Source: Monocercomonoides exilis PA203
Taxonomy: Eukaryota > Protista > Preaxostyla
Direction of reading: 5' to 3'
NCBI GenBank assembly: GCA_001643675.2
Contig: LSRY02000036.1
Span: forward strand, 806,001 to 870,000
Length of the DNA: 64,000 nucleotides
Shown: one piece after another, positions 30,334 to 64,000 of the stretch
Position numbering within the stretch: the stretch's first letter is position 1
Layout of the letters: each line of letters begins with the position of its first letter
Notes under the pieces: generated by a model
What the model was told of the DNA's origin: nothing
Database searches by the model: none
Seen by the model: the letters and a program-made list of their open reading frames with translations, nothing else
Made by a program: the position numbers and the translations under genes

Positions 30334-33300
30334 ATGTTTACAGTGTTTTTTGGTCTTCAGGTGTTGTCTATGGTTTGTGGAGGAAATGAAGGATGTGTAA
30401 AAAATTTGAATCTTGTAAAACACTTTGGTTCAAATCTGTTGAATTGCATTCATTGTAATATTGCAAGTACAATTGAAATTAAGTGTCTTTTGCTCAACAC
30501 TTCTTTAAAGTTGCAGAAAGTTTTGATTTCTCAGGATTTCTGCGGTTGTGCCTTCTTCATTGATGATAAATCAAGTTTGATCGCTGAAAATGCTCAGTTA
30601 TTGAAGAAATCAAAGATTTCAATGAGTTTATTTGAGAGCGATGGTACTTGTGTTTTATTGAATGTATCTTTGACAAGAAACAATTTTTGTTCGTATTCGG
30701 AATCCATTGTTGGAATGAGAAATCAATGTTCTTCATTATTATTGAAACATTGTGATTGGAAAAATATTGCTTATAAAGGATCAGAAAGCTTTATAAGAAG
30801 TGGAACAGGGAGTTTTGTGTCAATGCTCAAATGTGGATGCACAAATATATCTGAAAATTGTCTAATGAATGAAAAGATGAAAAGAGAAGACTCAATCACT
30901 GAAAGCCACATGGAAGACAGCATTGTGATGAGCTCAATGAATGTGCTTGAAGGAGGAATAGCGAGTGGAACACAGGGATCGGGAGTATTTTTGTGCAGCA
31001 ATTGCACATTTTATCGCAACGAAAGAAGAGATTGGAGAATAAGGAATACAGATAGACTTCCAACAACAGAAACGCAGACATTCAAAAATGCTGAGTGGAT
31101 TGAATGCTCTGCTGAATATGGTGGAGCACTGTATGTTCATGACAATTCGAGTACAACGCTCACTGTGGAGAATTCATCTTTTGTGAAATGCAAGGCAACA
31201 TCCACAAGAGGCGGCGGAATTTATGCTCTGAATATTGGAGAATGCACTGTGAAGCATTCTGTGTTTGAAGAGTGTTATTGTGCTTCATCGACAGATTGGG
31301 GAGGAGCTGGAGTTGAGATATCAGGAATAAGCATCCAGCCATTTTTGGAAAATTGTTTGTTCGAAGATTGCTGGTCTGAGAACGATGGTGGAGGACTATC
31401 TATAATTGCATCATCTTCATCGATAACCACTGATTGCATTTTGGACTGCTCATTTAAAAATTGCAGCTCTCATAACATTACAAATGGAGGAGGGGGAGGG
31501 TATGATGTCATAAATTCGCAAAGATTTGTTTTGAAAAACTGTCTTTTTCAGCATTGTTTAAGTGAGCATGTTGGAGGTGGTTGCTGTATTTCTTTAAATG
31601 AAAATAATGGGAATGTTCTTTGTTTTTGTTACTTTCATAACAACAGTGCTCCAATAGGAAATGATGTGGCTACGCCAAATTATAATAATAATTCTCAAAT
31701 TTTTTGGTGTTTCTCATCAGGAACAGATGGAAATAGATATAATGCAAAAGGAAGTGATAAAAGTGAATGGTTGCCAAACAATGGGGGGAAATGCAGATTC
31801 GTCTCCTCCAAATTGACTCAATCCAAAGCGAAAGATACATATAGCTGCGGGTTGAATGAGAGTTATGCCTGTCTAACAATCAGCCATTGTCTTTCCCAAT
31901 TGATCGTGGGGTTTGTGGAGGAAATGAAAGTGTTGAGTGGAACAGTTGTGGAAGGCAAAGGAGTTGATATTGGAGAGAAAACGATCTGTTTGAGTGGAGT
32001 TTCTCCATCTGGCTCTGCCATTGAAACAAAGTTTGAGGCAAATGGGCTGAGTCTATTTTGTGTTGGAGCAGGGGAGTTGGCTGTGAATGATTTGTTTGTG
32101 GTTCACAACACCTCATTTGAAAACAACCGAAGAAGCAGATTATTTGAGATTCAGGGAAGAGGATTGATGGATGTGAAGAGAATGAACATTTCGATGGATG
32201 CAGCTCATTCAGAAGAGAGGAGCATTCAAAACTCACTTGTGAAAGTTGATGGTGGAGAGTTGAAGATGCAAGATGTGAAATGGTTGCAAACATTCAGCAC
32301 CACAAGCGTGATATCTCTTTCTCAGGAGGCAGCTGTTTCATTGTCTCTGGATAACTGCACATTCAGCAACATTGTGAGGACAACAGCCGGATCATCGTTG
32401 ATGAGTTCAGGTGAAGGGTCATTTTCGATAACACTTGAAGGATGCACGATTTATGGCTGTGGAAGTGAAGATTCTGTTTTTGGAGGAGGGATGATGGTTG
32501 AAGCGGGGAATATTGGTTCATTGAGGATGAATGGAGGGTTTGTGAAGAACTGTTATGCCTCGACCATTCAAGGGAGAGGAGGAGGGATTGGACTGAAAGT
32601 GAAAGATACAAGTGCAGATTTTCTGATTTCATCAACATTTGAAGGAAACAGGGCGAAATGGGGAAGTGATATTTTTGTTGACTCAATCGATCTGGGAACG
32701 ACTGCAACAAGTGGGAAGATCACTTCATTAACTGCTTCGAATTCCACAATAAACAAAATTCGGGGATTCCACAATGGAGATGAAACGATTCCAATTCCAC
32801 TTTGTGTGTATCTGATTTATTTGCCAGAAGAGATTGTTGCAAGCAATGTTGATGCATTTGATCATTCTTATTGTGGATATGCTGAGTTTCCCTGTCTGAC
32901 TTTAAAACATTCGCTGACTAGGCAAGAAGAGGAAAAGAAGATTGTTGTTGATGGGATGATTGCAATGGAAGAGGAGCTGATATTTGACTCCTTCAAGCAC
33001 ACAATCAAGGGGAATGATGAAAACAGCGGATGGAAGGTGATTGACGATTCTGACGGAAGTGGAGAAGGCATGATAACAGTCAATACTAATATGAATTTGA
33101 GAACATTGATTTTCTCCATTCCATCTATTCTACCAAATCATGAAGCATTCTTCAGTTCTTCCTCACAATCATTTTCGCTTGAAGATTGCTCACTGACATT
33201 TCAAGGCTCCCAGTCAGCGTTATCTTATGTATTTTTGTCAACAACAGCTGGTGAGGTGTCCGTTTCATCGTTGAATGTCTTGCACTTGACTATTGGGAAC

Positions 33301-36300
33301 TTTCCGCTGATTAATCTTGATGAAAGCAATGCTGCAGGAACATTCACTTCCATGAATATTGAGGATATAAGCTCGACAACAAATGGTGTTTTGTTTGGAG
33401 TGGAGAATGGAGCATCTTTTTCGATTAAAGATTCAACACTTTCAGTGAAAGCATCTTCACAAACAGATTTGCAGTCAGGATCAATTCAAATGATTTCCAC
33501 AAATTCAGCCAAGTTGCTGAAGTTCACGAATAATTCGATAAGTGGATTCAAAGGAATTGAAGGAAATGGAGGGGCAATTGAATGCACACTTGGGAGAGAT
33601 TGCTCACTGGAAATAGTCGGAGGGATGATGAGAGAGTGCAAGGTTAATGGAGGAAACGGAGGAGGGTTGTGGGTTGAGATGAAAGAAGGATCATCATTCA
33701 CTGTGGGAAACCTGACAGAGGCAGACTCAGCAAAAACAACATCTTTAAATGATGAAAACGATTTCTTCGGGCTCACAAATTGCAGGGCGATGCAAACAGC
33801 AGGTGGAGAGTGTGGATATGGAGGAGGGATTTATCTTCATTTGGATGATGAAGCAAGCTCATTCATCTTGAAGGAGGTATTGTTTTCTGGATGTGATGCG
33901 AGAGAAGGGAAAGAAATCTTCATCAATGCAAATGATCATTCGAGTGTGATGAGTAGAAGCTCAATTGGATTTGGAGTTGATTTGAATGATTTTGCAAAAT
34001 TGGATGTGTTTGAGAGATCAACATTGAATGAAACATTTGCCATTCCGCTGGTATTGTATTTGTGGAATAATTATTCAGGATGTGGATTTGTTGGAGGAGG
34101 ATTGTTGAGCCATGATTTTTCGAAGTGTGGATTCGAAGAGTTTCCATGCTGCACAATCTCCAAGGCAGCATCAGTCCATTTTGAAGGGAAGAAAAAGGAT
34201 GTTGCTCTTCTTGAGCCATTTGTCTTTGAGGAAGAATTAGAGTTGACTTCTAATGAATGGAGCATCAAAGGAAAAGTGGAAAATATAAAGTGTGATGTTT
34301 CTGATCAGAAAAAGGGAACACAAAGTGGATTTATTGCAAATGCAGTGTTTGTGTCAATGACTGGTATTATCTTTTCTTTGAAGAGATCGCTGACCTTTCA
34401 TGAAAGCGTGTTTGAGTGTTGTTTGGGGAAGCTCACACTGAGCAAATGCGGGATGGAGGGAGGCGCAGAGGCTATTTCGACCGTGTTTGTGAAGGCTGTT
34501 GGAGGGATTGTGGAAGTGATTGGTTTTGGATGTGAAAGAGGTGCCAAGTGGGGTTCATCGTTATTCGTTGTTGAAGGGAATGCTGAAAGTGTGTCTTCGA
34601 TGAATATGGCGAAAAGTGATTTTGGAGAAATCACGTTTGGGGATGGATGTGTTGTTGAGTGTCACAATGGAATTATCAATGAGATGTCAGGATGCTCGTT
34701 TTCATCTATTGCTCGCTCACAGGGAAGTGGAGGATGTGTGAGTGTTTCGAACAATAAGGATGATGAAGATAGAAGAGATTTCAAAGTGGAAATAAATGAC
34801 TGTTCATTCGAAGGATGTACTATTACTGGAGAGGAGGGAAATGAGATAGGAGGAGGTGCACTCTTTTGTGAGGCATCTTCAAAAACGAGTCTTGTGGTGA
34901 GTGGGTGCAAGTTTTATTGTTGCACAGCACCATATGGAGAGGGAAGTGTTGGATATGTAGGAGGAATAATGATGAACATACTGAAAGAAGAAGAAGAAGG
35001 GAAAGCAGGGTTTGTGATATATTCGCCTGTTTTTTCATCTGGGAAGCCAAACAATGCGAAATATGGGAAGGATTTATTTGTTTCATCTCCATCGCTAATT
35101 AACAGCATCAAGAACGAAACCCTTCCATTTGTGAAAGATAGACTGGAGAAGCTGACAGAAGACTCGCTGAGAGGATATGATGGAGGAAACAAGGAATGTG
35201 CAATCCCACTGATCTATTTCTGGAAAGGGATTGGAACGAATGTGGTTGTTGCAAGAGGAGGAAACAATGTGGTTGCATGTGGGTTGTTGGAGTATCCATG
35301 TGGGTCTGTTGATTATGGGGTGAAGCGAGGGAGTGACTTAGGGATTGAATCGATTGTTGTTCAGGGGACTTGTGATGTTTGGAGTGAAATGAGTGTGAGT
35401 GGGATGAGGCTGGAAGGAACAGATGGAGAATCAGACAAAATCCAATTTGTGACAGAGATTGAAGGAAATGGGAATGTTGTTGTTGAGTGCAGAGGAGTTG
35501 TTCAGTTCAAAGAAGTGGGGATGATGATTCCAACTGTCTTTGATAATGGTGCGGGAACACTCATCCAGACAGGTTCTAATGCAATCAAAACGAGTATTGT
35601 TGGATGTTCTTTTCACATGAAAGATGATGCTGAAGGTGAATTGTCATTTGTGCTGATAAGTGCATCAAAAGGAATTGTTTCGATTGAAAAGACAAACATA
35701 GTTGGATTCTCAACAACTCATGAGATAATGAGCATATCAACAAAGTGTGTGGTGATAATGAACAATGTGATATTTGAAGATATAACATTGAGTGGGAAAA
35801 GTGCAATTGCGACGACAGAAAGTGTGATTTCTGGGAGGGGGAATGATGATGCAGAAGAAGTGTGGAATATTCTGTTTGACAAATGCACATTTATGAATGT
35901 GAAGCACAGTGCGTCAAACAACCCTTCGTTGCTTTGTTGTGATGCGCCAAATGAAGTGAGATTGAAAATGGATAACTCAACAATTGATGGCTGTGGATCA
36001 GCAAGTTCTCATGAAGGAGGAGGGGTGTTTTTCCTTCTTAATGAGAAGGGGAGATTGGAGATGAATCACACAAATGTGACAGACTGTTTCTGTTCGAACA
36101 TTGGGAGAGGTGGAGGACTGTTTTTGAAAACACAGAGTGTTGCAAAGAAGACTTTGCCATTTGTGCTGTCGAACATCACATTCCGAGGAAATGTTGCATC
36201 GAAGGGGAGAGATGTGTTTGTGAAGTGCACTGACCTTGACACTCAGATTTCGGAGTGGCAGTTCCTGATCAACTTCGGAGAGCCATTTGTGAAGGAGCTG

Positions 36301-39300
36301 GCGATATGGGGATGCGCAGCAGACAATTATGGAGATGAAGAGGATCTGCTGAGGAGGGTGTTTGTGTTCAGGAATGAATTCATATTTGTATCTTCGATTA
36401 TGGGAAACAACAGCGACAGCAAGAACTGTGGGGAAATGAAGGGAGCATGTTCATCGCTGAATGTTGGGGTGAGCCACATCATCCCATCGGATTATTCGCA
36501 GCTGTATGTCTGGAATGAAACCAGATTAACTGGTTCGTGCTCAGCCGAGAAGGTGACGATCAAGTCGATGGAAGCGAACAGAAATGCTGAGATAAAAATC
36601 TGGGAGATTAATTTTGGAGGTGAAGGAGTTGTGACAACTTCGGAGTTTGCTCGATTGGAGAGAGTGAAATTTGTTTTTGAAGGAACGGGGAATATTGGCT
36701 GCTCGTGTTTGATACACCAATTGAATGGATCTCTTATTGTCGAATCTGTTTCATTCCTGTCAGAGAACAGATCAGAGGAGAATTCACAGATCCTTTTTGA
36801 TTGTTCTCTTATTGTTGTTGAAGATGGGCTGTTTGAAGCAGAAAAGTGCAGTGTTGGACATTTGAAATTCTCAAAACCTGTATTCGAGATTTTGAGTTCA
36901 GAAAGAGCAACATTTGAAGATTTGTCAGTCAGTGATGTGGAATGCAAGAGTTCAATGTTTGAATGTGGAAAGAGTGAAAACGTGGGAATTTCAAAATTGT
37001 CAGCCACAAATATCTCTTTGCAAGATAGAAGCCTCATCTCATTCGAAGCAATCAACTCTTCACTTGTTTTTTCATTGATGCAATCATCATTCTCAAACAT
37101 CATCAAAACAGCATCTGGATCCTGCATTATTTGCACAACTCAACCAATGACCGGCTTTGAGATGCTGAACTGCTCTTTTCGTGAATGCACATCAGAGTTG
37201 CAAAAAGGAAGCCAAGTGTCAGTGGCAAATGCAAACAAAATATTTCTTGACTCGTGTGTGTTTGTGGGAGATCTCGTTGGTTATTTCGAAAAGATGAATG
37301 TTGCAATGGATGAAATTTGCAGATGGAATGGGTCTGCAATTGATTTCTCGAGCAGTTCAGCTGTTATGAAAGACACAACAATCAGCAACTCCTCAAAGGG
37401 AGGGATGACTGTGAGAGGAGGATCTGTGACGATTGAGAAAGGAGAATTTTTGAACAATAATCCATTCATTGAAAATTATCCATCATTGAGAAGAAATATC
37501 ATCTGCTCAGATTCTGCTTCGCTGACCATTTCGAGCTTGAAGGGAGGAGATGGGGTGATGCCCAATTCTTCGCTGTGGATTCTGGATGATGGATGCAGCC
37601 TGGAAGGGATGGCAGGAGAAAGAGCATCTTCATTCTTCATTCCGGTGTTGGAAGGGGCTTCGACCAGCGAAAATGGAGGTGGAACAGAAATTCAATTCAA
37701 GGGGGTGCTTCTTCTGCCATGTGATTTGTCATTCCGACTGATTTTGTCAGCTGGAGATACAGACCTGATTGAGACATATCATTTTGCAGAAGATGGGTTT
37801 GTGAGTGAAGCGGAAGCAGTTGGGATGGTGCCTTCGAGAAATCTTTCGTCGATCCCAGATGAGACGGATGTGTCTGTGATGATTGTGTATGGAAAGCGGT
37901 TGTCTGCAACTGATGCATTTGTTCTGAAGAACAGAAGCGAGCCCAAGGCAAATGGGGATGAAAGGGTTGTTGAAGGAGGAAAAGAAGGGAAATCGATCTG
38001 GCCAATTATTGTTGTTATATTGGCTGTGATGTTTCTTATTGTTCTGATTATTTCTGTGATATTCATTGTTCGATGGAAGAAGGTTAAGAATGAAGCAGAA
38101 GATCTGAGAGAGATTGTGAATGATAACATCAGAAAAGATCCAAAGGCGTTTGAGATGGTGACGATGGAGATGTTGCCTGAGGAGCAGTGGAGGAGAGCAG
38201 AGAGGGAGGCAGAGAAGAAGAGCGATGAGAGAATCAAGAAGAGGGTGTATGTGAAAAGTTTGGGACATTCGGAGTCATCGGAGCATCTTCTGTCTGAGAG
38301 TGGATCGACTGAATACATATTGGGGAGAGACTCAGACAAGATTCCTCAATGGATGCTAGAGAAGGTTGATGAAGAAGAAGATGAGGAAACAAGAAAAAGA
38401 ACTCCATCGCCATCCATTTCATCCACTTCAACCACAGACACTTCAGATACAGAATCCACTTTTGTTCGTGGGGAGGATCTGTGCCCAACCACTTCATCGA
38501 TGTCGAATCTGGTGGATGCAATGGCCTGCTCATCTCCTCATGAGAAGCTGATTGTGGATCTGAGGGATTCGCTGTTCATGCTGCTTCATGGGAAGAACGA
38601 GAAGAAGGAGATGGCGATAGGCACTCTGAAGGAAAGAGAGCAGACAGCTGCCCAGGTCTTGTTCTGGGTGGCCAATCTCGCCCTCCACTCATTTTCCGAG
38701 ATGGACAACCCTCTTCAGTCACTTGTCAATCTGAGCCCACACATTGTGCTGTTCTCTGAGCACATGGTCATCTGCATTGTGATGCACTCCGACTTCTCAT
38801 CTGACGATGATTCGGATTCATCATCCATCTCCTCGTCAACTGTTGTAACATCTGCCAGCGATGATGATGATGATGATGATAGAGATTCTTTGCCCTCGTC
38901 TGCGTTTGAGGATGAGGATGACAATTTCAAGAAAGAGTGTCTGAGGTGGAAGGCGCCAGAGCTGCAGATGAACAAGAAGATGGGGGCAACAGAGAAGTCG
39001 GTGGCATTCTCGGTCGGGATGATGCTGTGGGAGTGCCTGACGCTCCAGATCCCGTTTGGGGAGTATGAGGCAGAGGCAGCTGGGCAGAAGATTGTGAATG
39101 GAGAAGTGCCGAATGTGGGGCTGGTGAAGGACACACCATATTTGGAGTTTTGGAGGCTGTGTGTCTCGTGGAATGAGGCAGACAGGCCTTCTCTGAGCGG
39201 GATGAAGCGAGAGCTGATTGGGCACTTTCCAGCTGGGGCAGTGATGGTGACGCTGACAGACGCAATCTGCGATTCTTTGCGAGAAGAAGAAGAAGAGGAA

Positions 39301-39396
39301 GAAGAAGAGGAAGAAGAGGGGATAGAAGAGGAAGAAGATGGGATGAGCGAATCAATAAGCAAAGAAGAAGGGAGGAAAAGCCGAAAATACTTGTGA
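30334..39396 (+). CDS. Giant intronless type-I membrane receptor: Cys/Gly-rich beta-helix (pectin-lyase/Pmp-like GGA/GGG..FxxC) ectodomain, TM, degenerate TKL-type kinase domain (copy A)
   Basis: 3020-aa ORF with a hydrophobic N-terminus, repeated 'GGG.Y/L', 'F..C' and 'CG...PC.T' modules, TM 'WPIIVVILAVMFLIVLIISVIFIV', and kinase C-lobe motifs 'LRWKAPE', 'SVAFSVGMMLWECLTLQIPF', 'DRPSL'. Confidence 0.9.
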   Translation: MFTVFFGLQVLSMVCGGNEGCVKNLNLVKHFGSNLLNCIHCNIASTIEIKCLLLNTSLKLQKVLISQDFCGCAFFIDDKSSLIAENAQLLKKSKISMSLFESDGTCVLLNVSLTRNNFCSYSESIVGMRNQCSSLLLKHCDWKNIAYKGSESFIRSGTGSFVSMLKCGCTNISENCLMNEKMKREDSITESHMEDSIVMSSMNVLEGGIASGTQGSGVFLCSNCTFYRNERRDWRIRNTDRLPTTETQTFKNAEWIECSAEYGGALYVHDNSSTTLTVENSSFVKCKATSTRGGGIYALNIGECTVKHSVFEECYCASSTDWGGAGVEISGISIQPFLENCLFEDCWSENDGGGLSIIASSSSITTDCILDCSFKNCSSHNITNGGGGGYDVINSQRFVLKNCLFQHCLSEHVGGGCCISLNENNGNVLCFCYFHNNSAPIGNDVATPNYNNNSQIFWCFSSGTDGNRYNAKGSDKSEWLPNNGGKCRFVSSKLTQSKAKDTYSCGLNESYACLTISHCLSQLIVGFVEEMKVLSGTVVEGKGVDIGEKTICLSGVSPSGSAIETKFEANGLSLFCVGAGELAVNDLFVVHNTSFENNRRSRLFEIQGRGLMDVKRMNISMDAAHSEERSIQNSLVKVDGGELKMQDVKWLQTFSTTSVISLSQEAAVSLSLDNCTFSNIVRTTAGSSLMSSGEGSFSITLEGCTIYGCGSEDSVFGGGMMVEAGNIGSLRMNGGFVKNCYASTIQGRGGGIGLKVKDTSADFLISSTFEGNRAKWGSDIFVDSIDLGTTATSGKITSLTASNSTINKIRGFHNGDETIPIPLCVYLIYLPEEIVASNVDAFDHSYCGYAEFPCLTLKHSLTRQEEEKKIVVDGMIAMEEELIFDSFKHTIKGNDENSGWKVIDDSDGSGEGMITVNTNMNLRTLIFSIPSILPNHEAFFSSSSQSFSLEDCSLTFQGSQSALSYVFLSTTAGEVSVSSLNVLHLTIGNFPLINLDESNAAGTFTSMNIEDISSTTNGVLFGVENGASFSIKDSTLSVKASSQTDLQSGSIQMISTNSAKLLKFTNNSISGFKGIEGNGGAIECTLGRDCSLEIVGGMMRECKVNGGNGGGLWVEMKEGSSFTVGNLTEADSAKTTSLNDENDFFGLTNCRAMQTAGGECGYGGGIYLHLDDEASSFILKEVLFSGCDAREGKEIFINANDHSSVMSRSSIGFGVDLNDFAKLDVFERSTLNETFAIPLVLYLWNNYSGCGFVGGGLLSHDFSKCGFEEFPCCTISKAASVHFEGKKKDVALLEPFVFEEELELTSNEWSIKGKVENIKCDVSDQKKGTQSGFIANAVFVSMTGIIFSLKRSLTFHESVFECCLGKLTLSKCGMEGGAEAISTVFVKAVGGIVEVIGFGCERGAKWGSSLFVVEGNAESVSSMNMAKSDFGEITFGDGCVVECHNGIINEMSGCSFSSIARSQGSGGCVSVSNNKDDEDRRDFKVEINDCSFEGCTITGEEGNEIGGGALFCEASSKTSLVVSGCKFYCCTAPYGEGSVGYVGGIMMNILKEEEEGKAGFVIYSPVFSSGKPNNAKYGKDLFVSSPSLINSIKNETLPFVKDRLEKLTEDSLRGYDGGNKECAIPLIYFWKGIGTNVVVARGGNNVVACGLLEYPCGSVDYGVKRGSDLGIESIVVQGTCDVWSEMSVSGMRLEGTDGESDKIQFVTEIEGNGNVVVECRGVVQFKEVGMMIPTVFDNGAGTLIQTGSNAIKTSIVGCSFHMKDDAEGELSFVLISASKGIVSIEKTNIVGFSTTHEIMSISTKCVVIMNNVIFEDITLSGKSAIATTESVISGRGNDDAEEVWNILFDKCTFMNVKHSASNNPSLLCCDAPNEVRLKMDNSTIDGCGSASSHEGGGVFFLLNEKGRLEMNHTNVTDCFCSNIGRGGGLFLKTQSVAKKTLPFVLSNITFRGNVASKGRDVFVKCTDLDTQISEWQFLINFGEPFVKELAIWGCAADNYGDEEDLLRRVFVFRNEFIFVSSIMGNNSDSKNCGEMKGACSSLNVGVSHIIPSDYSQLYVWNETRLTGSCSAEKVTIKSMEANRNAEIKIWEINFGGEGVVTTSEFARLERVKFVFEGTGNIGCSCLIHQLNGSLIVESVSFLSENRSEENSQILFDCSLIVVEDGLFEAEKCSVGHLKFSKPVFEILSSERATFEDLSVSDVECKSSMFECGKSENVGISKLSATNISLQDRSLISFEAINSSLVFSLMQSSFSNIIKTASGSCIICTTQPMTGFEMLNCSFRECTSELQKGSQVSVANANKIFLDSCVFVGDLVGYFEKMNVAMDEICRWNGSAIDFSSSSAVMKDTTISNSSKGGMTVRGGSVTIEKGEFLNNNPFIENYPSLRRNIICSDSASLTISSLKGGDGVMPNSSLWILDDGCSLEGMAGERASSFFIPVLEGASTSENGGGTEIQFKGVLLLPCDLSFRLILSAGDTDLIETYHFAEDGFVSEAEAVGMVPSRNLSSIPDETDVSVMIVYGKRLSATDAFVLKNRSEPKANGDERVVEGGKEGKSIWPIIVVILAVMFLIVLIISVIFIVRWKKVKNEAEDLREIVNDNIRKDPKAFEMVTMEMLPEEQWRRAEREAEKKSDERIKKRVYVKSLGHSESSEHLLSESGSTEYILGRDSDKIPQWMLEKVDEEEDEETRKRTPSPSISSTSTTDTSDTESTFVRGEDLCPTTSSMSNLVDAMACSSPHEKLIVDLRDSLFMLLHGKNEKKEMAIGTLKEREQTAAQVLFWVANLALHSFSEMDNPLQSLVNLSPHIVLFSEHMVICIVMHSDFSSDDDSDSSSISSSTVVTSASDDDDDDDRDSLPSSAFEDEDDNFKKECLRWKAPELQMNKKMGATEKSVAFSVGMMLWECLTLQIPFGEYEAEAAGQKIVNGEVPNVGLVKDTPYLEFWRLCVSWNEADRPSLSGMKRELIGHFPAGAVMVTLTDAICDSLREEEEEEEEEEEEGIEEEEDGMSESISKEEGRKSRKYL

Positions 39397-42068: not shown

Positions 42069-43628
42069 TTAGTAATCCCCTTTCATCCATTCCGGAACCT
42101 CGCTCTCAACATAGTTCTTCCAAAATGTCTTCATCGTCCACCCTTCCTTGTTGCTGATGTTTGCATCGTGCCTCATCCACTCCGGCGGTTCGCTCTTAAC
42201 ATTCGCAATCCACAGCATCGCCATCGTCCTCCCGCTCTTGTCCACTTGTGTAGTTCTGTGCCTCATCCACTCTGGCGGTGCTGTCTTCACCCACGTAATC
42301 CAGTGCATAGCCATCGTCATTCCATTCTGGTCAATAAACACTGCCTCGTGTCTCATCCACTCTGGCGGATCTGTTTGAACATCCCCAATCCAATGCATCG
42401 CCATCGTCCATCCGTTCTCATCCCCAACCGTAACCTCGTGCCGCATCCACTCTGGTGGTTCTGATTTGACGTGTCTGATCCAGTGCATCGCCATTGTCCA
42501 CCCGTCCTTGTCCACTTGCATTCCCCTGTGCCTCATCCACTCCGGCGGTTCTGTTTTCACATTCACAATCCATATCATCGCCATCGTTCTCCCATATATG
42601 TCCCCACGCCCCACATCGTGCCTCATCCATTCCGGAGGTTCGCTCTTCGCATTCTCTATCCACAGCATTGCCATTGTTCTTCCTTCCTCGTCTCCCTCTG
42701 TCGCCTCGTGCCTCATTTCCTCTGAAGGCTCTGCTTTTTTTTCAACAATCCAGTTCATCGCCTCTGTTCTTCTATTTCTGTCAAAAACTTTCGCTTCGTC
42801 CTTTCCTCCTTCCAAACTTTCGCATTTTCTCTCATTTTCACAGCTCGATCCCTCTCTTCTCTTTTCTTTATCGTGAGGTGCTTTGTCCGCCTTCATCCAT
42901 TCTGGTGGATCTGTTTTGATGTGCTTTATCCACAGCATGTCCATCGTCCAGCCATCATTGTTCGCAAGTGCGGGATCATGTCTCATCCATTCTGGTGGCT
43001 TTGTTTTCACATTTTTAATCCAGATCATCGCCATCGTCCATCCGTCCTTGTTGCGCAGGGTGATGTCATGTCTCATCCATCCCAGAACATCCGTTTTAAC
43101 TTTACTTATCCACAGCATTGCCATCGTCCAGCCATCATTGTCTGCAAGTGCAGGGTCGTGCCTCATCCATTCCGGTGGAGTATTTTCTTTCAAAATAATC
43201 CAATTCATTGCCATTGTTCTTCCCCAAATATCTTTAAGAGTATTATCATGCTTCATCCATTCTGGTGGTTCTGTTTGAACATGATAAGACCACAACATAG
43301 CCATTGTCCATCCGTTATTGTTGCAAAGTGTGATATCGTGTCTCATCCAAATTGGTGGTTCTGTCCTCACATGACTTATCCATAGCATCGCCATTGTCCG
43401 TCCGCCATTGCCGCCAAGTGTGATATCGTGCCTCATCCATTCCGGTGGTTCTGTCTTCACATTCTCTATCCATTTCATAGCCATTGTACTTCCATCATCA
43501 CCTCCGATTGTTATATCATGTCTCATCCACTTTGGAGGCTCTGTTTTGTTCTTCCTGATCCAATTAATTGCCTTTGTATCTCCTAAAAAGTCTTTCTCAG
43601 GATTTAAAGAACCCGCTTCATTTCCCAT
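42069..43628 (-). CDS. Tandem 30-aa repeat protein (PPEWMRHD-x4-D-x2-G-x-TMAM-x-WI-x2-VKTE), 16 repeats in two blocks of 8; remote ankyrin-like
   Basis: 519-aa intronless ORF. A 90-nt periodicity is visible in the DNA (recurrent CTCATCCAyTCyGG on the + strand). The two blocks are separated by a charged linker. Confidence 0.85.
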   Translation of the reverse strand: MGNEAGSLNPEKDFLGDTKAINWIRKNKTEPPKWMRHDITIGGDDGSTMAMKWIENVKTEPPEWMRHDITLGGNGGRTMAMLWISHVRTEPPIWMRHDITLCNNNGWTMAMLWSYHVQTEPPEWMKHDNTLKDIWGRTMAMNWIILKENTPPEWMRHDPALADNDGWTMAMLWISKVKTDVLGWMRHDITLRNKDGWTMAMIWIKNVKTKPPEWMRHDPALANNDGWTMDMLWIKHIKTDPPEWMKADKAPHDKEKRREGSSCENERKCESLEGGKDEAKVFDRNRRTEAMNWIVEKKAEPSEEMRHEATEGDEEGRTMAMLWIENAKSEPPEWMRHDVGRGDIYGRTMAMIWIVNVKTEPPEWMRHRGMQVDKDGWTMAMHWIRHVKSEPPEWMRHEVTVGDENGWTMAMHWIGDVQTDPPEWMRHEAVFIDQNGMTMAMHWITWVKTAPPEWMRHRTTQVDKSGRTMAMLWIANVKSEPPEWMRHDANISNKEGWTMKTFWKNYVESEVPEWMKGDY

Positions 43629-51400: not shown

Positions 51401-52910
51401 AAGCGAATGCGCAGAACACATTTGACAAAAAGCAGAAGTCCAAAGAAATAAGCGAATGTGACACCTGCAGAAACGAGTGGACAAGATGAGATGGACTCAT
51501 CTGAATGGAAGGAATGATTGATTGAGTGACTGATGAAGACACAGACGATGATGAAGAGGAAGGCGTAGAAGTTTTATCAGACGAAGAAGTCGAAGAAGAA
51601 GAAGATGATGACGATGATGAAGGCCAAGAGAGAACAGAAGCACCACTCGTCATCTGTTGCATCTGCCCAGATGAAACAAATGCAAACACATCCTTCAAAC
51701 GCGGCGAGGCGAGAAATGATGAATATGTTCCAGAGGTCAGAATACGAGAAACGACAGAGCAGCCAAAGCGGAGAAGAGAAGTGATGTGAAGAATGCGAAG
51801 TTGACTCGGAGGCAGAATTGTACGACGAATTAGTGTCGTGCCAGCTGATTCAGAAGTTGAAGACATATCTTTTTCATTTCCTTCCTCTTTCTTTCCTTCA
51901 TTCTTCTTTTTTGTATCGCGCTCTGCGTCAGATCCTGCAGTGGCATCAAGATATCTAATCCATTGATTGGCAAATGCATTTCCATTTATCGCTTCATCAT
52001 AGACCCTCACAACATTTAGTGCATGAGGTGAAGAAATAAGTTCAACTTTTCTTTGCTCTATCCATTGAAGAAGAAGAGGAACAAGTAAAGGAACGTTTCT
52101 CATGAAAGTATGAGATGCTAATATGCTTTCAAGGCAATATAGAAACTTTTCAGAAAGTGCTGAAAAAAGGTAATGAACAGGGTGAGATTCAGAAATAACA
52201 GTTGTTGGAATTTGAGTTTGATGAGTAAAAAATGCAGTCTCTGCCAAAGAAGAATGATTAAAAAAGTTGACAGTCATCTGAGTCAAATTTATTGGATCTA
52301 TCAGTATTAAAAAAGTTGGTGCAATTTCTTGAATATCGGTGTATGATAGAAGATGACCAAAAAAAACAATAATTGTGCTCAAAGGAATTAAAGCATCTTG
52401 ACACAACTGAATGGATGGCACTTCTGAATAAACTTTTAAAGCAGAAACCAAAGACATAGTTGTTTTCCTGACGAGATTCGAAATAAGTGTAATTTTCTTT
52501 GGTATATTAAATGTGCTCTCAATAAATGAAGACGATCTTAAAATAGCAAAGAGTTGAGATATAACTTTGCAAGATTTTTGAATCAAAATTTTTGATTCTT
52601 CGCTAATTGAAGGAGAAGAACGGATTAGTTCAGTTTCGCACTTTATAATGTCAATTGAAGCTTGAATTAATTCGAACACATGGGTATATTGTGAAAAGCT
52701 TGACGAATAATTGAAAATTTCTTGCACTATTACAAATCCATTGCATATTTCATGATATTTCTTTGCTTTCAGACATTTTAACGCAGTTGAATAAATGCGA
52801 GCAAAAGTATCAGGAGTTGAAAAGCATCCCTGCTTTATCAATGACAAAATAATATTTAAATTTGCTTCCAGCCGATTAGGATCGAATAATGCTTCAAAAT
52901 ACTGGTCCAT
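48474..52910 (-). CDS. Large helical-repeat protein with acidic tail; possible PELP1/Rix1 homolog
   Basis: 1478-aa ORF. 'SSLRCAVYSAICSLASLFG...LFPQFLSEVSP' followed by a basic KKKK linker and helical segments parallels the PELP1 'STVRTKVYAILELWVQVCG...LLTHLLSDISP' region; D/E-rich C-terminus. The CDS is secure; the identity is tentative. Confidence 0.55.
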   Translation of the reverse strand: MDQYFEALFDPNRLEANLNIILSLIKQGCFSTPDTFARIYSTALKCLKAKKYHEICNGFVIVQEIFNYSSSFSQYTHVFELIQASIDIIKCETELIRSSPSISEESKILIQKSCKVISQLFAILRSSSFIESTFNIPKKITLISNLVRKTTMSLVSALKVYSEVPSIQLCQDALIPLSTIIVFFGHLLSYTDIQEIAPTFLILIDPINLTQMTVNFFNHSSLAETAFFTHQTQIPTTVISESHPVHYLFSALSEKFLYCLESILASHTFMRNVPLLVPLLLQWIEQRKVELISSPHALNVVRVYDEAINGNAFANQWIRYLDATAGSDAERDTKKKNEGKKEEGNEKDMSSTSESAGTTLIRRTILPPSQLRILHITSLLRFGCSVVSRILTSGTYSSFLASPRLKDVFAFVSSGQMQQMTSGASVLSWPSSSSSSSSSSTSSSDKTSTPSSSSSSVSSSVTQSIIPSIQMSPSHLVHSFLQVSHSLISLDFCFLSNVFCAFASDALPLSFQIASVVEAGIKLLIATFTAFRSGCLAFPEGKAFLIPFSGVRWGRREKDNQVSKIGIGSSSGSSRDLIGKAEKDTSSFSNAYSSFSSAVASHTSKRFSDAEGDNPLLVVLERCHDEGLKAKNEEIEKQKAKTEKAKNEMQNFVNSKLAKGANQNRYQNYKKANSNGAEAKGPQKFNQSKPAGDKTSASSAVAAMSSIGNENSHLSSLYHRISLDIALTRRHSSLRCAVYSAICSLASLFGDLSLPLFSSLFPQFLSEVSPSRVLFRVQTDQSSKETTRGKSKGASQHSNNASLSQNQSASSGDSSSLAEEEGGKKKKLTAAQKRKQRLESLPNPMLDNLPPTKEEPVEMVPMGSKQRRKGKNSRGNEKTEPSAKTASSVSTASSSTSSEGSAATSISSASASDAPAKPLSQPVSTLQPLQQSHRVFVALLYQQADVARVSSVLSMFSSALVATAPNLEPSLSVVLLINLLCLLERAAGFRSVSIKSIPNPCLSSPSNPSSSSASSITAKQSGTQHSHQEKSSFDTSLSLPSFSTVASMSATPSIEIVAAFLHVISSFITMLPSYILSFFPISLLCWISSLMKRINSIVPTPFSVAQTSHASYPSFSSLFATTNSPFFVPPSFSVAVSRRASASSAISTTAIQPLFAEVLSSTQLISFSVENALCALSTRMSRSLSVCSACGRTQLKVYKHSAAMERKKAAGNKRGRKEFVGKEDRFGLLLGMTTNVAQKFVLVDGDSTLAEEDLEVVESNAAEAEHLRRKSSKLDEMDEDSESDDSMADDDFDGGVNDMADRSKESSEESEEVRESDDEISDEESDHLDERDHSMTTPSKRMSLAAETNEKDIKAESENSQKGKDEKSIGKFIELAPSRSIVSDKSIEKSDGCSTEAEVIRTSSDSDHLQSTKTIIPKEVQSQILIENDSQKEVNKITNEEIKKNIQEEVDESECESESDDNEKNQGSFYGIVDIPPQ

Positions 52911-60898: not shown

Positions 60899-63800
60899 AT
60901 GCAACTTCTTGTTGTTTGCCTTGAATTTGTGATTGGTGCATTTGGGAGCTGTCAACTACCTGACAAGAATGAGGAACAACTCCAATGCTGGATGGGGATG
61001 CTCAAAGGAAGACAAAACAGAAACGAAGAATGCGTTGTGAAGACAATGTGCAGAATGCACAACTCTTCAATTGGACTGGAGAATGTTTGCATTTATCGAT
61101 CAAGAGAAAAGTGTTCGTTTTTTGTTGGGGAACAATCTGCGCTGAGTTTTGGATGTTGCCTGCTGACTGAGAAAGGGAATCTTTCGTCTTCGACGATTTG
61201 CAATTGGGGGTTTTGTATTTTGAGAAATACATCGCTGATGAGCCGCTCTTGTTGTTTTTTGACAAACAGCGTCGTGGAGATGCAAAAAGCAAGTTCGTGT
61301 GTGCAGATAGAAAACTGTGAGTGGAGGAACATTGCGTTTTGTGGGAAAGGGAGTATTTTGAGAAATGGGGAAGGATTCAGCGAAGTTGTGAAAAAATGCA
61401 CTTTTGCGAATGTGACTGAGATGAACAAAGCCGATGAAAAGATGAAAAGCGAAGACTCAATCACTGAAAGCCACATGGAAGACAGCATTGTGATGAGCTC
61501 AATGAATGTGCTTGAAGGAGGAATAGTGAGTGGAACACAGGGATCGGGAGTATTTTTGTGCAGCAATTGCACATTTTATCACAACGAAAGAAGAGATTGG
61601 AGAATAAGGAATATAGATAGACTGTCAACAACAGAAACACAGACATTCAAAAATGCAGAGTGGATTGAATGCTCTGCTGATTGCGGTGGAGCACTGTATG
61701 TTCATGATAATCCAAACGCAACGCTCACTGTGGAGAATTCATCTTTTGTGAAATGCAAAGCAACATCCACAAGAGGAGGAGGCATTTATGCTCTGAATAT
61801 TGGAGAATGCACTGTGAAGCATTCTGTGTTTGAAGAGTGTTATTGTGCTTCATCGACAGACTACGGAGGGGCTGGTGCGGAGGTTGAAGAGTTGAATGTT
61901 CAAGTTCTTTTCGAAAATTGCATGTTTAGAAACTGTTTGTCGCAAAATGATGCAGGAGGCTTATTTATTGGAACATCAAAAGCATCAAAAACAAACGATT
62001 GTGTGCTGGATTGTTTGTTTATCAATTGCAGTGGCAATAATGCTAGTAATGGTGATGGTGGAGGACTGATGAATTGGAACCAAATTGATAAGATTGTGAC
62101 AAAAAACTGTTTGTTTATCGGATGTCATTCAGATAAGGAAGGCGGAGGAATTTCTTTAATGGTAAGAAGCTTTTCAGGAAGTTTGATTTGTTTTTGTTTT
62201 TTCCACAATAACAGTGCTCCGTTCGGGAGCGATGTACTCGTCAGTCAAAAAATAGATTATTCCCAACTGATTTGGTGTTTTTCAACAAAAACAGATGGGC
62301 TGAGATATTATGATGGGGAAGATAAAAGTGAATGGTTGCCAAACAATGGGGGGAAATGCAGATTCGTCTCCTCCAAATTGACTCAATCCAAAGCGAAAGA
62401 TACATATAGCTGCGGGTTGAATGAGAGTTATGCCTGTCTAACAATCAGCCATTGTCTTTCCCAATTGATCGTGGGGTTTGTGGAGGAAATGAAAGTGTTG
62501 AGTGGAACAGTTGTGGAAGGCAAAGGAGTTGATATTGGAGAGAAAACGATCTGTTTGAGTGGAGTTTCTCCATCTGGCTCTGCCATTGAAACAAAGTTTG
62601 AGGCAAATGGGCTGAGTCTATTTTGTGTTGGAGCAGGGGAGTTGGCTGTGAATGATTTGTTTGTGGTTCACAACACCTCGATTGAAAATAATAGAAGAAG
62701 CAGATTATTTGAGATTCAGGGAAGAGGATTGATGGATGTGAAGAGAATGAACATTTCGATGGATGTTGCTCATTCAGAAGAGAGGAGCATTCAAAACTCA
62801 CTTGTGAAAGTTGATGGTGGAGAGTTGAAAATGAAAGATGTGAAATGGTTGCAAACATTCAGTATCACAAGTGTGATATCACTTTCTCAAGGATCGTCAG
62901 TTTCATTCTCTCTGGATAACTGCACATTTAGCAACATTGTGAGGACAACAGCCGGATCATCGTTGATAAGTGCCAGTGAAGGGCCATTTTCGATAACACT
63001 TGAAGGATGCACAATTGATGGCTGTGGAAGTGTTGATTCTGTTTTTGGAGGAGGGATGATGATTGAAGTGGGGAATGTTGGTTCATTGAGGATGAATGGA
63101 GGGTTTGTGAAGAACTGTTATGCCTCGACCACTCAAGGGAGAGGAGGAGGGATTGGACTGAAAGTGAAAGATACAAGTGCAGATTTTCTGATTTCATCAA
63201 CATTTGAAGGAAACAGGGCGAAATGGGGAAGTGATATTTTTGTTGACTCAATCGATCTGGGAACGACTGCAACAAGTGGGAAGATCACTTCATTAACTGC
63301 TTCGAATTCCACAATAAACAAAATTCGGGGATTCCACAATGGAGATGAAACGATTCCAATACCGCTGTGTGTGTATCTGATTTATTTGCCAGAAGAGATT
63401 GTTGCAAGCAATGTTGATGCATTTGATCATTCTTATTGTGGATATGCTGAGTTTCCCTGTCTGACTTTAAAACATTCGCTGACTAGGCAAGAAGAGGAAA
63501 AGAAGATTGTTGTTGATGGGATGATTGCAATGGAAGAGGAGCTGATATTTGACTCCTATAAACACTCAATCAGGGGGAATGATGAAAACAGCGGATGGAA
63601 GGTGATTGATGAATGTGATGGAAGTGGAGAAGGCATGATAACAGTCAATACTAATATGAATTTGAGAACATTGATTTTCTCCATTCCATCTGCTCTTCCA
63701 AATCATGAAATATTCTTCAGTTCCACCTCACAATCATTTTCGCTTGAAGATTGCTCACTGACATTTCAAGGCTCCCAGTCAGCGTTATCTTATGTATTTT

Positions 63801-64000
63801 TGTCAACAACAGCTGGTGAGGTGTCCGTTTCATCGTTGAATGTCTTGCACTTGACTATTGGGAACTTTCCGCTGATTAATCTTGATGAAAGCAATGCTGC
63901 TGGAACATTTACTTCCATGAATATTGAGGATATAAGCTCGACAGGAAATGGTGTTTTGTTTGGAGCGGTGAATGGAGCATCTTTTTCGATTAAAGATTCA
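60899..64000 (+). CDS. Second giant receptor paralog (copy B), 5' part; runs off the window end
   Basis: Open frame from ATG 60899 (MQLLVVCLEFVIGAFGSC...), absent from the ORF track because it has no stop in the window. Near-identical to copy A at 61434-61860 and 62321-64000. Confidence 0.9.
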   Translation, partial: MQLLVVCLEFVIGAFGSCQLPDKNEEQLQCWMGMLKGRQNRNEECVVKTMCRMHNSSIGLENVCIYRSREKCSFFVGEQSALSFGCCLLTEKGNLSSSTICNWGFCILRNTSLMSRSCCFLTNSVVEMQKASSCVQIENCEWRNIAFCGKGSILRNGEGFSEVVKKCTFANVTEMNKADEKMKSEDSITESHMEDSIVMSSMNVLEGGIVSGTQGSGVFLCSNCTFYHNERRDWRIRNIDRLSTTETQTFKNAEWIECSADCGGALYVHDNPNATLTVENSSFVKCKATSTRGGGIYALNIGECTVKHSVFEECYCASSTDYGGAGAEVEELNVQVLFENCMFRNCLSQNDAGGLFIGTSKASKTNDCVLDCLFINCSGNNASNGDGGGLMNWNQIDKIVTKNCLFIGCHSDKEGGGISLMVRSFSGSLICFCFFHNNSAPFGSDVLVSQKIDYSQLIWCFSTKTDGLRYYDGEDKSEWLPNNGGKCRFVSSKLTQSKAKDTYSCGLNESYACLTISHCLSQLIVGFVEEMKVLSGTVVEGKGVDIGEKTICLSGVSPSGSAIETKFEANGLSLFCVGAGELAVNDLFVVHNTSIENNRRSRLFEIQGRGLMDVKRMNISMDVAHSEERSIQNSLVKVDGGELKMKDVKWLQTFSITSVISLSQGSSVSFSLDNCTFSNIVRTTAGSSLISASEGPFSITLEGCTIDGCGSVDSVFGGGMMIEVGNVGSLRMNGGFVKNCYASTTQGRGGGIGLKVKDTSADFLISSTFEGNRAKWGSDIFVDSIDLGTTATSGKITSLTASNSTINKIRGFHNGDETIPIPLCVYLIYLPEEIVASNVDAFDHSYCGYAEFPCLTLKHSLTRQEEEKKIVVDGMIAMEEELIFDSYKHSIRGNDENSGWKVIDECDGSGEGMITVNTNMNLRTLIFSIPSALPNHEIFFSSTSQSFSLEDCSLTFQGSQSALSYVFLSTTAGEVSVSSLNVLHLTIGNFPLINLDESNAAGTFTSMNIEDISSTGNGVLFGAVNGASFSIKDS

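Follow-up and report, generated by a model that had tools for sequence, protein, structure and literature searches.

Two paralogous genes, copies A and B, lie on the same strand of a 64,000-nt stretch of contig C32 of the Monocercomonoides exilis PA203 assembly (the window), and their sequences switch abruptly between near identity and deep divergence. The locus raises the question of which process has produced this pattern. A sequence-only reading had described the genes as receptor paralogs built from constant blocks (C1, C2) and hypervariable cassettes (V1, V2), and had proposed that segmental recombination or gene conversion exchanges the variable blocks as in dedicated diversification systems. 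Genome-wide searches covered the 82.3-Mb assembly of 101 contigs. They yielded a sample of 62 family members, whole or partial (the B segment, window copy A and loci L002–L068), and the family analysis is based on 30 N-terminal halves plus 31 further V2 segments, making 61 V2 segments in all. The features of the two genes are collected in Table 1.

Table 1. Features of copies A and B (window coordinates unless a contig is named)
Feature	Position	Strand	Description
Copy A, whole gene	30334–39396	+	3,020-aa uninterrupted ORF
A block V1	30334..30868	+	genome-wide DNA search finds only itself
A block C1	30869..31295	+	near-identical to B C1
A block V2	31296..31755	+	best other genome copy is C, 77%
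A remainder	31756..39396	+	beta-helix modules 2–6, transmembrane helix and cytoplasmic tail; near-identical to B, 12 clustered difference patches
A transmembrane helix	37996..38070 (aa 2555–2579)	+	25-residue hydrophobic stretch, then RWKK
A kinase-like C-lobe	38923..39216 (aa 2864–2961)	+	PF07714 and solved-structure kinase matches
Copy B, whole gene	60899 to beyond window end; stop at contig C32 ~875.9 kb	+	3,013-aa ORF
B block V1	60899..61433	+	signal peptide and first rungs of beta-helix module 1
B block C1	61434..61860	+	middle rungs of module 1, kept alike in A, B, C and E by homogenisation
B/D common tract	61826..62528	+	whole V2 and first ~200 nt of C2; D at contig C32 ~920.8 kb
B block V2	61861..62320	+	last rungs of module 1, the family's hypervariable segment
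B block C2 onward (module 2 on)	62321..64000	+	A-like body, runs off the window

The ungapped identity between A and B, measured in 60-nt windows at a fixed offset of 30,565 nt, is 0.33–0.57 in V1, 0.85–1.00 in C1 and 0.27–0.62 in V2. From position 62321 of B it is 1.00 for ~360 nt and then 0.83–1.00, with the differences clustered. DNA identity jumps sharply between about 45–60% and 95–100% at the block boundaries, confirming the constant offset, the abrupt switches and the sudden restart of C2 followed by patchy differences that had been noticed earlier. The protein identity of 25% in V1 and 47% in V2 agrees with the quarter and the half estimated by eye, and the compensating indels seen in V2 are one pair of single codons. 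From codon 475 on, 256 of 7,617 sites differ between A and B; the two remain identical for up to 1,380 nt at a stretch, compared with a mean longest run of 178 and a maximum of 493 in 10,000 permutations (p < 1e-4). The conserved scaffold described for V2 was also recovered, with the GGG motifs, C..F.N and FHNN...G.D invariant or nearly so in 30 paralogs. The notion of length-conserved hypervariable cassettes stood in part: the conservation of length is real, but it is not special to the V blocks, as the lengths of C1 and C2 are kept just as well throughout the family.

The family genes are single ORFs, so that a spliced model is needless. Those of A, B and C are uninterrupted in the assembly at 3,007–3,020 aa each, and that of C (3,007 aa) is complete and reads on into the kinase-like tail. 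Copies C, D and E, as well as most of the family matches, sit in open frames of ~2,500–3,050 aa; C and E each have their own start codon and their own upstream flank. All five partners, A to E, are situated inside ~280 kb of contig C32. A 3,620-aa ORF adjoining copy A was considered as a family member and rejected as unrelated. A homologue search among 5.8 billion proteins found 108 sequences, all 108 of them from M. exilis and many carrying PF07714, and the family is large and, among these proteins, restricted to this species.

The proteins of the A/B family are type I membrane proteins of ~2,500–3,000 aa. A signal peptide is followed by six right-handed beta-helix modules, a single transmembrane helix and, on the cytoplasmic side, a tail containing a degenerate TKL-kinase-like C-lobe. 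On the isolated tail of A, PF07714 scores 26.1 bits and passes the Pfam gathering threshold of 23.1, in an alignment that starts at the APE region and covers only profile positions 162–258 of 258. Among solved structures, the kinases TNNI3K, ILK and TAK1 match best (E 5e-4 to 8e-3), and they align to the tail over the C-lobe part only. Inspection by eye of the sequence upstream of the C-lobe match did not reveal an HRD motif, and to judge from these features the A tail is likely a pseudokinase. The earlier assignment as receptors is borne out by the membrane anchor and the partial kinase-like tail.

An AF2 model of B residues 1–520 (pLDDT 74.7, pTM 0.78) shows module 1 as one continuous beta-helix. 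Foldseek with this model returned weak E-values only, at 2e-3 or worse, and the fold was named subsequently from VIA-align, where the top rows were all beta-helices (Z 25.9, rmsd 3.4 Å over 331 residues against 6nw9_B). Pfam gave no matches on the ectodomain, and recognition in the ESM Atlas was low, with matches without names. The fold of module 1 resembles that of right-handed parallel beta-helix proteins such as phage tailspikes, AlgE epimerases, PL6 lyases and pertactin-type adhesins (Z 20–26, rmsd 3.1–4 Å over 300–365 residues), whereas the sequence identity to them is just 7–13% and no Pfam match links them. The common fold is no proof of a common function. Module 1 would be the ligand-binding tip of the receptor.

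Comparison with the partners proves that copy B is a mosaic, composed of a C/E-type 5' flank and V1, a common C1, a D-type V2 and an A-type body. Over all 535 nt, V1 of B is 95% identical to C and 93% to E at the nucleotide level, and about 45% identical to A. The C1 blocks are 94.6% identical between A and B and 95.8% between B and C, with dS of 0.12–0.15. V2 of B is 56% identical to A and 98% identical to D over all 460 nt. The common tract with D extends over 746 aligned nt at 98%, whereas B and D as a whole are 66% identical, and otherwise ~61% at the protein level. C2 and C3 of B match A at 96–99%. Copy A contains foreign sequence as well: the patch at 34950–35180 is 90% identical to paralogs on contig C27 and only ~83% to B. 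No exact donor was identified for this patch, the C27 paralogs being the best match, and it is regarded as being of a foreign type. For V1 of A there is no donor at the DNA level genome-wide, and placing it as a distant sister of the B/C/E V1 gives p = 0.47 in the AU test.

The trees of the separate blocks are incongruent with strong support, as had been predicted. V1 groups (B,C,E) and C1 groups (A,B,C,E), each with 100% support; V2 groups (B,D) and (A,C), both with 100%; and C2 and C3 give ((A,B),C) with 97–100%. For groups picked after the trees had been inspected, the AU test rejected {A,B} (p = 6e-6) and {A,B,C} (p = 0.002) in V2, {B,D} (p = 2e-58) and {B,C,E} (p = 8e-5) in C2, and {B,D} in C1 (p = 1e-35). 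The PHI statistic was 0.140 compared with 0.424 under permutation for the 5 genes and 0.830 compared with 0.976 for 30 genes; in neither set did any of 1000 permutations reach the observed value (z = -77 in both). The predicted heterogeneity in dS was likewise found. Between A and B, dS falls from about 3 in V1 to 0.15 in C1, is saturated in V2, and drops again to 0.08 in C2 and 0.02 in C3; between B and D it is 0.105 in V2 as against 1.10 in C1. Block trees, AU and PHI tests, dS and the partner sequences all agree and support segmental recombination or gene conversion, rather than selection on point mutations, as the origin of the A/B pattern.

Similar mosaics occur elsewhere in the family. 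L004 and L031 are 100% identical over 2,812 nt yet 36–57% identical 5' of codon 487, mosaic tracts at 98% cover 654 nt in L016–L034 and 420 nt in C–E, and the mosaic pair L025–L026 has a V2b-only tract that is 100% identical. Sharp identity jumps in independent paralog pairs concentrate at the C1/V2 and V2/C2 borders, in line with the breakpoint clustering that had been predicted; this is a descriptive result and the pairs are not fully independent, and the strict histogram of tract endpoints contains 9 tracts, too few for a test of clustering.

An account without recombination, in which old duplicates diverged in the ordinary way, with strong diversifying selection acting on the two V blocks and purifying selection on the rest, could draw on the position of V1 and V2 in the membrane-distal module, a plausible site of ligand contact. 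It is already contradicted by the tests above and is barely credible: not only dN but also dS varies more than 100-fold from block to block, dN/dS is below 1 wherever dS can be estimated (0.03–0.46 in the V blocks of the mosaic comparisons), a single history is rejected, and V2 of B is nearly identical to that of an otherwise distant paralog. A further account is an artefact, either as chimeric joins of paralogs in the ONT assembly or as identical tracts made by Pilon homogenisation. ONT reads were assembled with Canu and the result was polished in ten Pilon rounds, and the family overlaps with 'unclassified repeats' (PMC8767320); in addition, the 27.5-kb contig C95 duplicates a locus on C13. 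Independent short-read contigs, from 2016 DNA and from RNA of another study, nevertheless confirm two of the three B junctions. RNA contigs without mismatches bridge V1/C1 at 61274–61528 (255 nt) and V2/C2 at 62198–62490 (293 nt), whereas the C1/V2 junction is absent among the contigs listed. The V2/C2 junction of A itself appears as a loose contig end, at 62321, carrying the end of A's V2. One DNA contig was not counted as support for B, as it has D-type bases at 62230, 62239 and 62245. These Logan contigs are short in this repeat family and have rare variants dropped. Polishing, moreover, cannot make blocks of 460–535 nt at 45–56% identity, the long ORFs of A, B and C are intact, and analogous mosaics are present in many pairs on several contigs. 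We therefore consider an artefact extremely unlikely.

The sequence-only reading had likened the pattern to VLR, vlsE and VSG mosaics. A programmed and ongoing system of this type would copy V1 and V2 cassettes into expressed receptors during vegetative growth and so vary the surface repertoire. It could account for a V2 that is hypervariable family-wide (mean pairwise identity 0.56–0.67), for breakpoints at both V2 borders, for the clean V2 transfer between B and D, for the L025–L026 tract, and for the few short significant templated runs that were found within V2 in an otherwise mixed test. Other evidence speaks against it. V1 is not a two-sided cassette: no similarity between A and B was found anywhere upstream of it, so that V1 is where their homology begins on the 5' side. 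V1 of B is contiguous with an upstream flank common to C and E (at least 756–1,370 nt at 90–93% among B, C and E, and 90–91% from B to either of the others) and moves together with it, and the upstream flank of A is unrelated to those of B, C and E. Mosaic patches run along the entire 9-kb gene, beyond the V blocks. No silent partial donor cassettes, or arrays of them, were found among the partners, which are full-length and apparently intact frames, and the complete ORFs of A, B and C in the assembly differ from the incomplete germline gene of a VLR-type locus. Around V2, only short direct and inverted repeats at chance level were detected, and its borders are ordinary conserved coding sequence. 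Of the 61 V2 segments, 57 lack any copy that reaches 95%, and the other four are the B–D pair and one pair due to a redundant contig; most V2s are thus private, and swapping of a whole V2 is rare rather than routine. The common tracts also keep 2% divergence (dS 0.1) and are therefore not very recent. A programmed system is thus very unlikely. RNA contigs matching the B-specific V1 and V2 suggest that copy B is transcribed.

The Borrelia vlsE and lamprey VLR systems operate inside a single individual or clone. Each pairs one incomplete or expressed locus with silent partial cassettes, and the flanking repeats are defined. The M. exilis genes share with them variable segments in a constant frame and sequence copied from other loci, but the partners are all complete genes, no flanking repeats were found, and the common tracts have a dS of about 0.1. 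The var genes of Plasmodium falciparum, the VSPs of Giardia and the VSGs of trypanosomes are mosaic surface-protein families shaped by ectopic recombination or gene conversion. Like these, the M. exilis family is large, clustered and lineage-specific, its paralogs are patchworks of differing histories, its conserved blocks serve as recombination anchors, and its outermost domain is the most variable. In contrast, the genes alone give no sign of mutually exclusive expression, an expression site, a telomeric location or silent donor arrays, and the ectodomain is a beta-helix with a kinase-like tail attached, unlike the DBL, CXXC and VSG folds. M. exilis is a gut commensal that is not known to be a target of adaptive immunity. 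In the receptor-like kinase and resistance-gene clusters of plants, paralogs exchange sequence as well. The likeness extends to a repetitive solenoid ectodomain, a transmembrane helix, a TKL-type kinase-like domain, the clustering of the genes, and conversion that homogenises most of the gene while the ligand-binding part is hypervariable. However, the M. exilis solenoid is a chain of right-handed beta-helix modules instead of LRRs, only the kinase C-lobe is detectable in A, and dN/dS does not exceed 1 in the V blocks of the mosaic comparisons.

The family most probably evolves by segmental duplication together with frequent interlocus (ectopic) gene conversion or recombination among paralogs. 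Exchange would take place mostly between neighbours on the same chromosome, in tracts of ~0.2 to >1.4 kb that would hold most of the gene near-identical between partners. Such tracts would tend to end on meeting very divergent sequence and so would leave islands of deep divergence. The chief ones are V1 and V2, which form the first and last rungs of module 1, the membrane-distal one. Now and then, a tract anchored in the conserved flanks would move a whole V2, as between B and D. There, the 5' half of the tract is D-subfamily-like and the last ~200 nt are A/B/C-like, which implies at least two events. We infer that the mechanism is homologous recombination limited by mismatches, by selection keeping V2 diverse, or by both, and that exchange occurs on an evolutionary time-scale and not within a culture. 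It is a familiar mode of evolution for surface-gene families, and there is no sign of a purposeful cell programme.

The divergence of V2 in young duplicates calls for separate consideration. In recent segmental duplicates, the synonymous divergence of V2 is about 4–20 times that of the flanks. In the pairs L020–L024, L012–L022 and L015–L021, dS is 0.5–1.1 in V2 compared with 0.06–0.19 in the flanks, and at least 434–1,446 nt of upstream non-coding DNA are 91–95% identical. No V2 donor above 79% exists in the assembly for A, C, E, L020 or L024; the sole close copy of the L015 V2 is on the redundant contig C95, and the nearest V2 to that of L021 among the 61 is 77% identical. Simple conversion with V2 exempt fits the young duplicates only if long tracts homogenise intergenic DNA too, and the V2 divergence may owe something as well to locally elevated mutation or to conversion in small pieces from many donors. 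That V2 is diversified in place by a locally raised mutation rate, atop ordinary gene conversion elsewhere, would agree with a 4–17-fold excess over the coding flanks in four to five recent pairs other than B–C, with a V2 divergence far above the 5–9% of the upstream non-coding DNA in the three pairs compared, with the lack of donors in the genome for these pairs, and with several duplicate pairs that stay mutual nearest relatives in V2 on long branches. The same pattern results, however, from conversion tracts that end at V2 and homogenise the sequence on either side of it. Furthermore, a mutational signature or machinery was not identified, the most extreme case, B–C, is explained by the transfer of D-type sequence, and some runs within V2 are templated; such targeted mutagenesis is therefore very improbable. 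The broader proposition, that V2 is actively diversified at a rate several-fold over that of the surrounding neutral sequence, whether many paralogs serve as templates for piecemeal micro-conversion or mutation is locally targeted, we regard as unlikely. If it were true, each sampled receptor would possess a private ligand-binding segment, and a germline or vegetative mechanism of receptor diversification would exist in a free-standing protist gene family, the largest of an amitochondriate eukaryote.

The 'protein tyrosine kinase (TKL)' expansion of M. exilis, with 332 genes, is reported to be the largest gene family of the genome (PMC6759080; PMC8767320). The A/B family very probably represents the same genes, or at least one large branch of them, as its homologues are annotated as MONOS_ proteins with PF07714. 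The texts of these two papers do not contain 'gene conversion' and do not mention a beta-helix ectodomain or mosaicism ('pectin' and 'beta-helix' are absent from PMC6759080), and the literature searched holds no link between Monocercomonoides and gene conversion for this family.

Previous listings of the largest gene family of this mitochondrion-less protist give it no other label than 'tyrosine kinases' or 'uncharacterized'. The genes of one large branch, at the least, code for giant receptors, each with six beta-helix modules, and gene conversion keeps these genes alike except at the hypervariable tip. This likeness explains why the genes have been registered as 'unclassified repeats', and it is a warning that gene trees, orthology calls and short-read polishing are unreliable in the family. 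That young duplicates show such an excess of synonymous divergence in V2 is a peculiarity specific enough to be tested. As a hypothesis for the expansion, the family may serve the cell as a varied set of recognition receptors, whose ligands could be glycans of bacteria or of the host.

The two receptor paralogs in the window, copies A and B, were compared in five blocks that run 5' to 3' as V1, C1, V2, C2 and C3, where the V blocks are divergent and the C blocks near-identical between the copies. The copy A protein has a signal-peptide-like N terminus, an ectodomain of 2,500 residues, a transmembrane helix and a cytoplasmic tail of 440 residues. Cap motifs (CG..PC.T) at residues 505, 847, 1265, 1649 and 2032 split the ectodomain into six modules. 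The tail matches PF07714 with 26.1 bits, against a cut-off of 23.1 bits, and the match is confined to the C-lobe (profile positions 162-258), the same part over which solved kinases align. AlphaFold modeling of B residues 1-520 with 30 paralogs gave a structure (pLDDT 74.7, pTM 0.78) that superposes on right-handed beta-helices, which make up all the top rows and include the CBA120 tailspike TSP3 (Z 25.9, rmsd 3.4 Å, 331 residues). V1, C1 and V2 are accordingly successive rungs of one membrane-distal module, and the V2/C2 border is the junction of modules 1 and 2.

Positions of the receptor paralogs and of other open reading frames (ORFs). L-numbers are family loci, and G000:Cn is contig n of the same assembly; C32 carries the window
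Feature	Location	Strand	Description
Copy A	window 30334-39396	+	single uninterrupted ORF, 3,020 aa
Copy B	window, from 60899 past the end	+	3,013 aa, completed from L035
B block V1	window 60899-61433	+	
B block C1	window 61434-61860	+	
B block V2	window 61861-62320	+	
Transmembrane helix	aa 2555-2579		
Paralog C	contig C32, ~645 kb		
Paralog E (L037)	contig C32, ~688 kb (G000:C32:687300-693300)		
Paralog D	contig C32, ~920 kb		
L004	G000:C9:~810.1 kb	+	
L031	G000:C9:~796.4-799.2 kb	-	
L015, V2	G000:C13:~12.2 kb		
L054, V2	G000:C95:23937-24525		
ORF	window 7697-9283	+	528 aa, no Pfam family
ORF	window 12231-14744	-	837 aa, Enolase_N and Enolase_C
ORF adjoining A	window 15134-25996	-	3,620 aa, uninterrupted, no Pfam match
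ORF	window 42069-43628	-	519 aa, no Pfam family
ORF	window 48474-52910	-	1,478 aa, no Pfam family

No duplicated sequence lies between A and B, which identifies them as dispersed paralogs and not as a tandem segmental duplication. The long ORF adjoining A has no similarity to the receptor family. The enolase ORF is roughly double the normal length of an enolase, with its Enolase_C match broken into four stretches, and may represent an enolase that is extended or fused, or else a gene-model read-through.

A six-frame search of the genome (82.3 Mb, 101 contigs) found at least 44 paralogs. All 108 of the 108 database homologues are M. exilis proteins, annotated as 'uncharacterized protein MONOS_...' or 'putative protein tyrosine and serine/threonine kinase'. 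The largest gene family of M. exilis is that of the protein tyrosine kinases of the TKL group, with 332 genes (PMC6759080; PMC8767320), and it overlaps unclassified repeats (PMC8767320). Gene conversion is unmentioned in both published genome papers (PMC6759080; PMC8767320), and 'beta-helix' is unmentioned in the 2019 genome paper (PMC6759080), the sole paper checked for that term.

At a constant offset of 30,565 nt, the identity between A and B is 0.33-0.57 in V1, 0.85-1.00 in C1 and 0.27-0.62 in V2; from 62321 on it is 1.00 for ~360 nt and then patchy. These identities bear out the abrupt switches at block boundaries described in the sequence-only reading, and the compensating indel pair and retained scaffold residues that it saw in V2 are real. 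The long-range linkage of the B blocks comes from the ONT assembly, and Logan contigs from a 2016 DNA run and from RNA runs of a different study served as an independent check. Across V1/C1 (61274-61528) and V2/C2 (62198-62490) they agree with B without a mismatch; among the matches listed, no contig covers the C1/V2 junction of B. One contig with a loose end at 62321 reads the V2 terminus of A, showing that the V2/C2 junction of A exists too. The presence of V1 and V2 in their B-specific form in RNA contigs suggests transcription of B, DNA being a possible contaminant of RNA libraries. A contig from DNA run X1 (record 5, window 62092-62350) agrees with D at three sites (62230, 62239 and 62245) and with B at 62332; it may reflect either a further variant or an assembly path that switched, in the de Bruijn graph, from one near-identical paralog to another.

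Genome-wide DNA searches with the V segments located the relatives of the divergent blocks. V1 of B is best matched by C (95%) and E (93%), and V2 of B by D (98% over all 460 nt), followed by a further paralog with 92% over the first 274 nt. For A, V1 has no match elsewhere in the genome, and the best match of V2 is C at 77%. In the DNA preceding the ATG, at least 756-1,370 nt are shared by B, C and E at 90-93%, and A is without similarity to these flanks. Downstream of the gene, ~300 nt are common to A, B and C at 92-95%. The homology between A and B extends from codon ~179 to ~300 nt past the stop codon. The proposal that V1 is an exchanged cassette did not hold, because the DNA upstream of A and B is unrelated and the B flank is of the C/E type.

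By fine mapping, the tract shared by B and D spans about 61826-62528. It resembles the D subfamily in its 5' part and the A/B/C type over its final ~200 nt, in D too, so that at least two events are needed; the transfer between B and D could have gone either way. Paralog E resembles B and C at 90-96% identity through its upstream flank, V1 and C1, and from V2 onward the gene belongs to another, very large subfamily (134 first-look candidates at about 72-76%), ~53% identical. E, too, is a chimera.

Maximum-likelihood trees, each of one of the five blocks in 30 paralogs, contradict one another at full support. The V1 tree groups (B,C,E) and leaves A alone on a long branch, the C1 tree groups (A,B,C,E), the V2 tree contains (B,D) and (A,C), and the C2 and C3 trees show ((A,B),C) with E distant. 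With groups named post hoc from these trees, the AU test on V2 rejects {A,B} (p = 6e-6), {A,B,C} (p = 0.002) and {B,C,E} (p = 1e-4); {B,D} is rejected on C1 (p = 1e-35) and on C2 (p = 2e-58), where {B,C,E} is rejected as well (p = 8e-5). The incongruence that the sequence-only reading had anticipated is thus present. PHI, in our own implementation, gave z ~ -77, with 0 of 1000 permutations as extreme, for the 5-gene and 30-gene alignments alike. Between A and B, dS is about 3 in V1, 0.15 in C1, saturated in V2, 0.08 in C2 and 0.02 in C3, and between B and D it is 0.105 in V2 versus 1.10 in C1 and 0.56 in C2. The dN/dS ratio is below 1 in all blocks with estimable dS. Divergence is strongly uneven in dS, not in dN alone, whereas uniform dS would have spoken against recombination. 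The proposed gene conversion or segmental recombination is supported, and C, E and D can be named as partners.

Of the 7,617 sites from codon 475 to the end of the gene, 256 distinguish A from B, and 213 of these 256 lie inside 12 patches. The longest stretch without a difference measures 1,380 nt; in permutations it reached at most 493. Inside the patches, copy C usually agrees with one partner, and the A patch at 34950-35180 is 90% identical to paralogs on another contig versus ~83% to B. Conversion is thus pervasive, with many partners, and extends beyond V1 and V2. A second and still cleaner case of the A/B type is formed by L004 and L031, which lie in opposite orientation ~11 kb apart. 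Over 2,812 nt (A-codons 487-1401) they do not differ at all, whereas 5' of that their identity is 36-57% and their upstream flanks are unrelated; the breakpoint lies at the junction of modules 1 and 2.

The comparison with VSG, vlsE and VLR made in the sequence-only reading implied a dedicated diversification system. The searches made revealed no hallmark of a cassette system: no silent partial donors, the partners being open frames of 2,500-3,050 aa; no repeats or signals flanking V2; and no incomplete germline gene. Paralogs C and E each possess a start codon and an upstream flank of their own, and the shared tracts are still at dS ~0.1. On present evidence such a system is unlikely, and ordinary interlocus gene conversion with recombination in a clustered multigene family is the best-supported explanation. 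Loss of homology at the hypervariable distal-module rungs would fix the tract ends, and selection for diverse distal rungs perhaps sets them too. Exchange within the var, VSP and plant resistance-gene families, which are mosaics as well, may be a fitting analogy. Mosaicism by conversion has not previously been described in M. exilis or in this gene family; the kind is a known one, and its occurrence here is well documented.

Across the family, mean pairwise nucleotide identity is lowest in V1 and V2 (0.55-0.69), versus 0.70-0.85 in C1 and at the start of C2. Sharp jumps, defined as identity of at least 0.93 falling by at least 0.30, recur in independent pairs around two places, codons ~285-324 and codons ~473-482; the pairs include L020-L024, L012-L022, L004-L031, L019-L028 and the A/B/C/E set. 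The family-wide comparisons fit mosaicism throughout the genome. In five close pairs (six with the older L007-L009), the flanks are mostly 93-99% identical and V2 just 55-87%, and dS is 0.5-2.5 in V2 versus 0.06-0.19 in the flanks (up to 0.55 for L007-L009). Three close pairs are young segmental duplicates, as their upstream non-coding DNA is 91-95% identical over 434-1,446 nt.

The sole feature that ordinary conversion leaves partly unaccounted for is that V2 shows too much synonymous divergence in young duplicates. V2 of C, E, L020 and L024 has no copy above 79% in the whole assembly, the nearest V2 neighbor is less than 85% identical for 46 of 61 V2 segments, and matches of at least 95% among the 61 are limited to B-D and one redundant-contig pair. 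When runs of differing sites were compared with third paralogs as templates, significance was confined to a few short runs (p < 0.002, 0.004, 0.006), the majority falling short of it. There are three readings of the V2 excess: conversion tracts may end at V2 while homogenizing the DNA on either side of it, intergenic DNA included; V2 may be replaced piecemeal from many donors; or the mutation rate may be locally raised. V2 of L054 is 100% identical to that of L015; the matches of its 27.5-kb contig C95 mirror those of C13 in other searches too, and C95 probably represents redundant sequence, a duplicate contig or a haplotig, and not a separate locus. The synonymous excess of V2 in young duplicates merits experiment.
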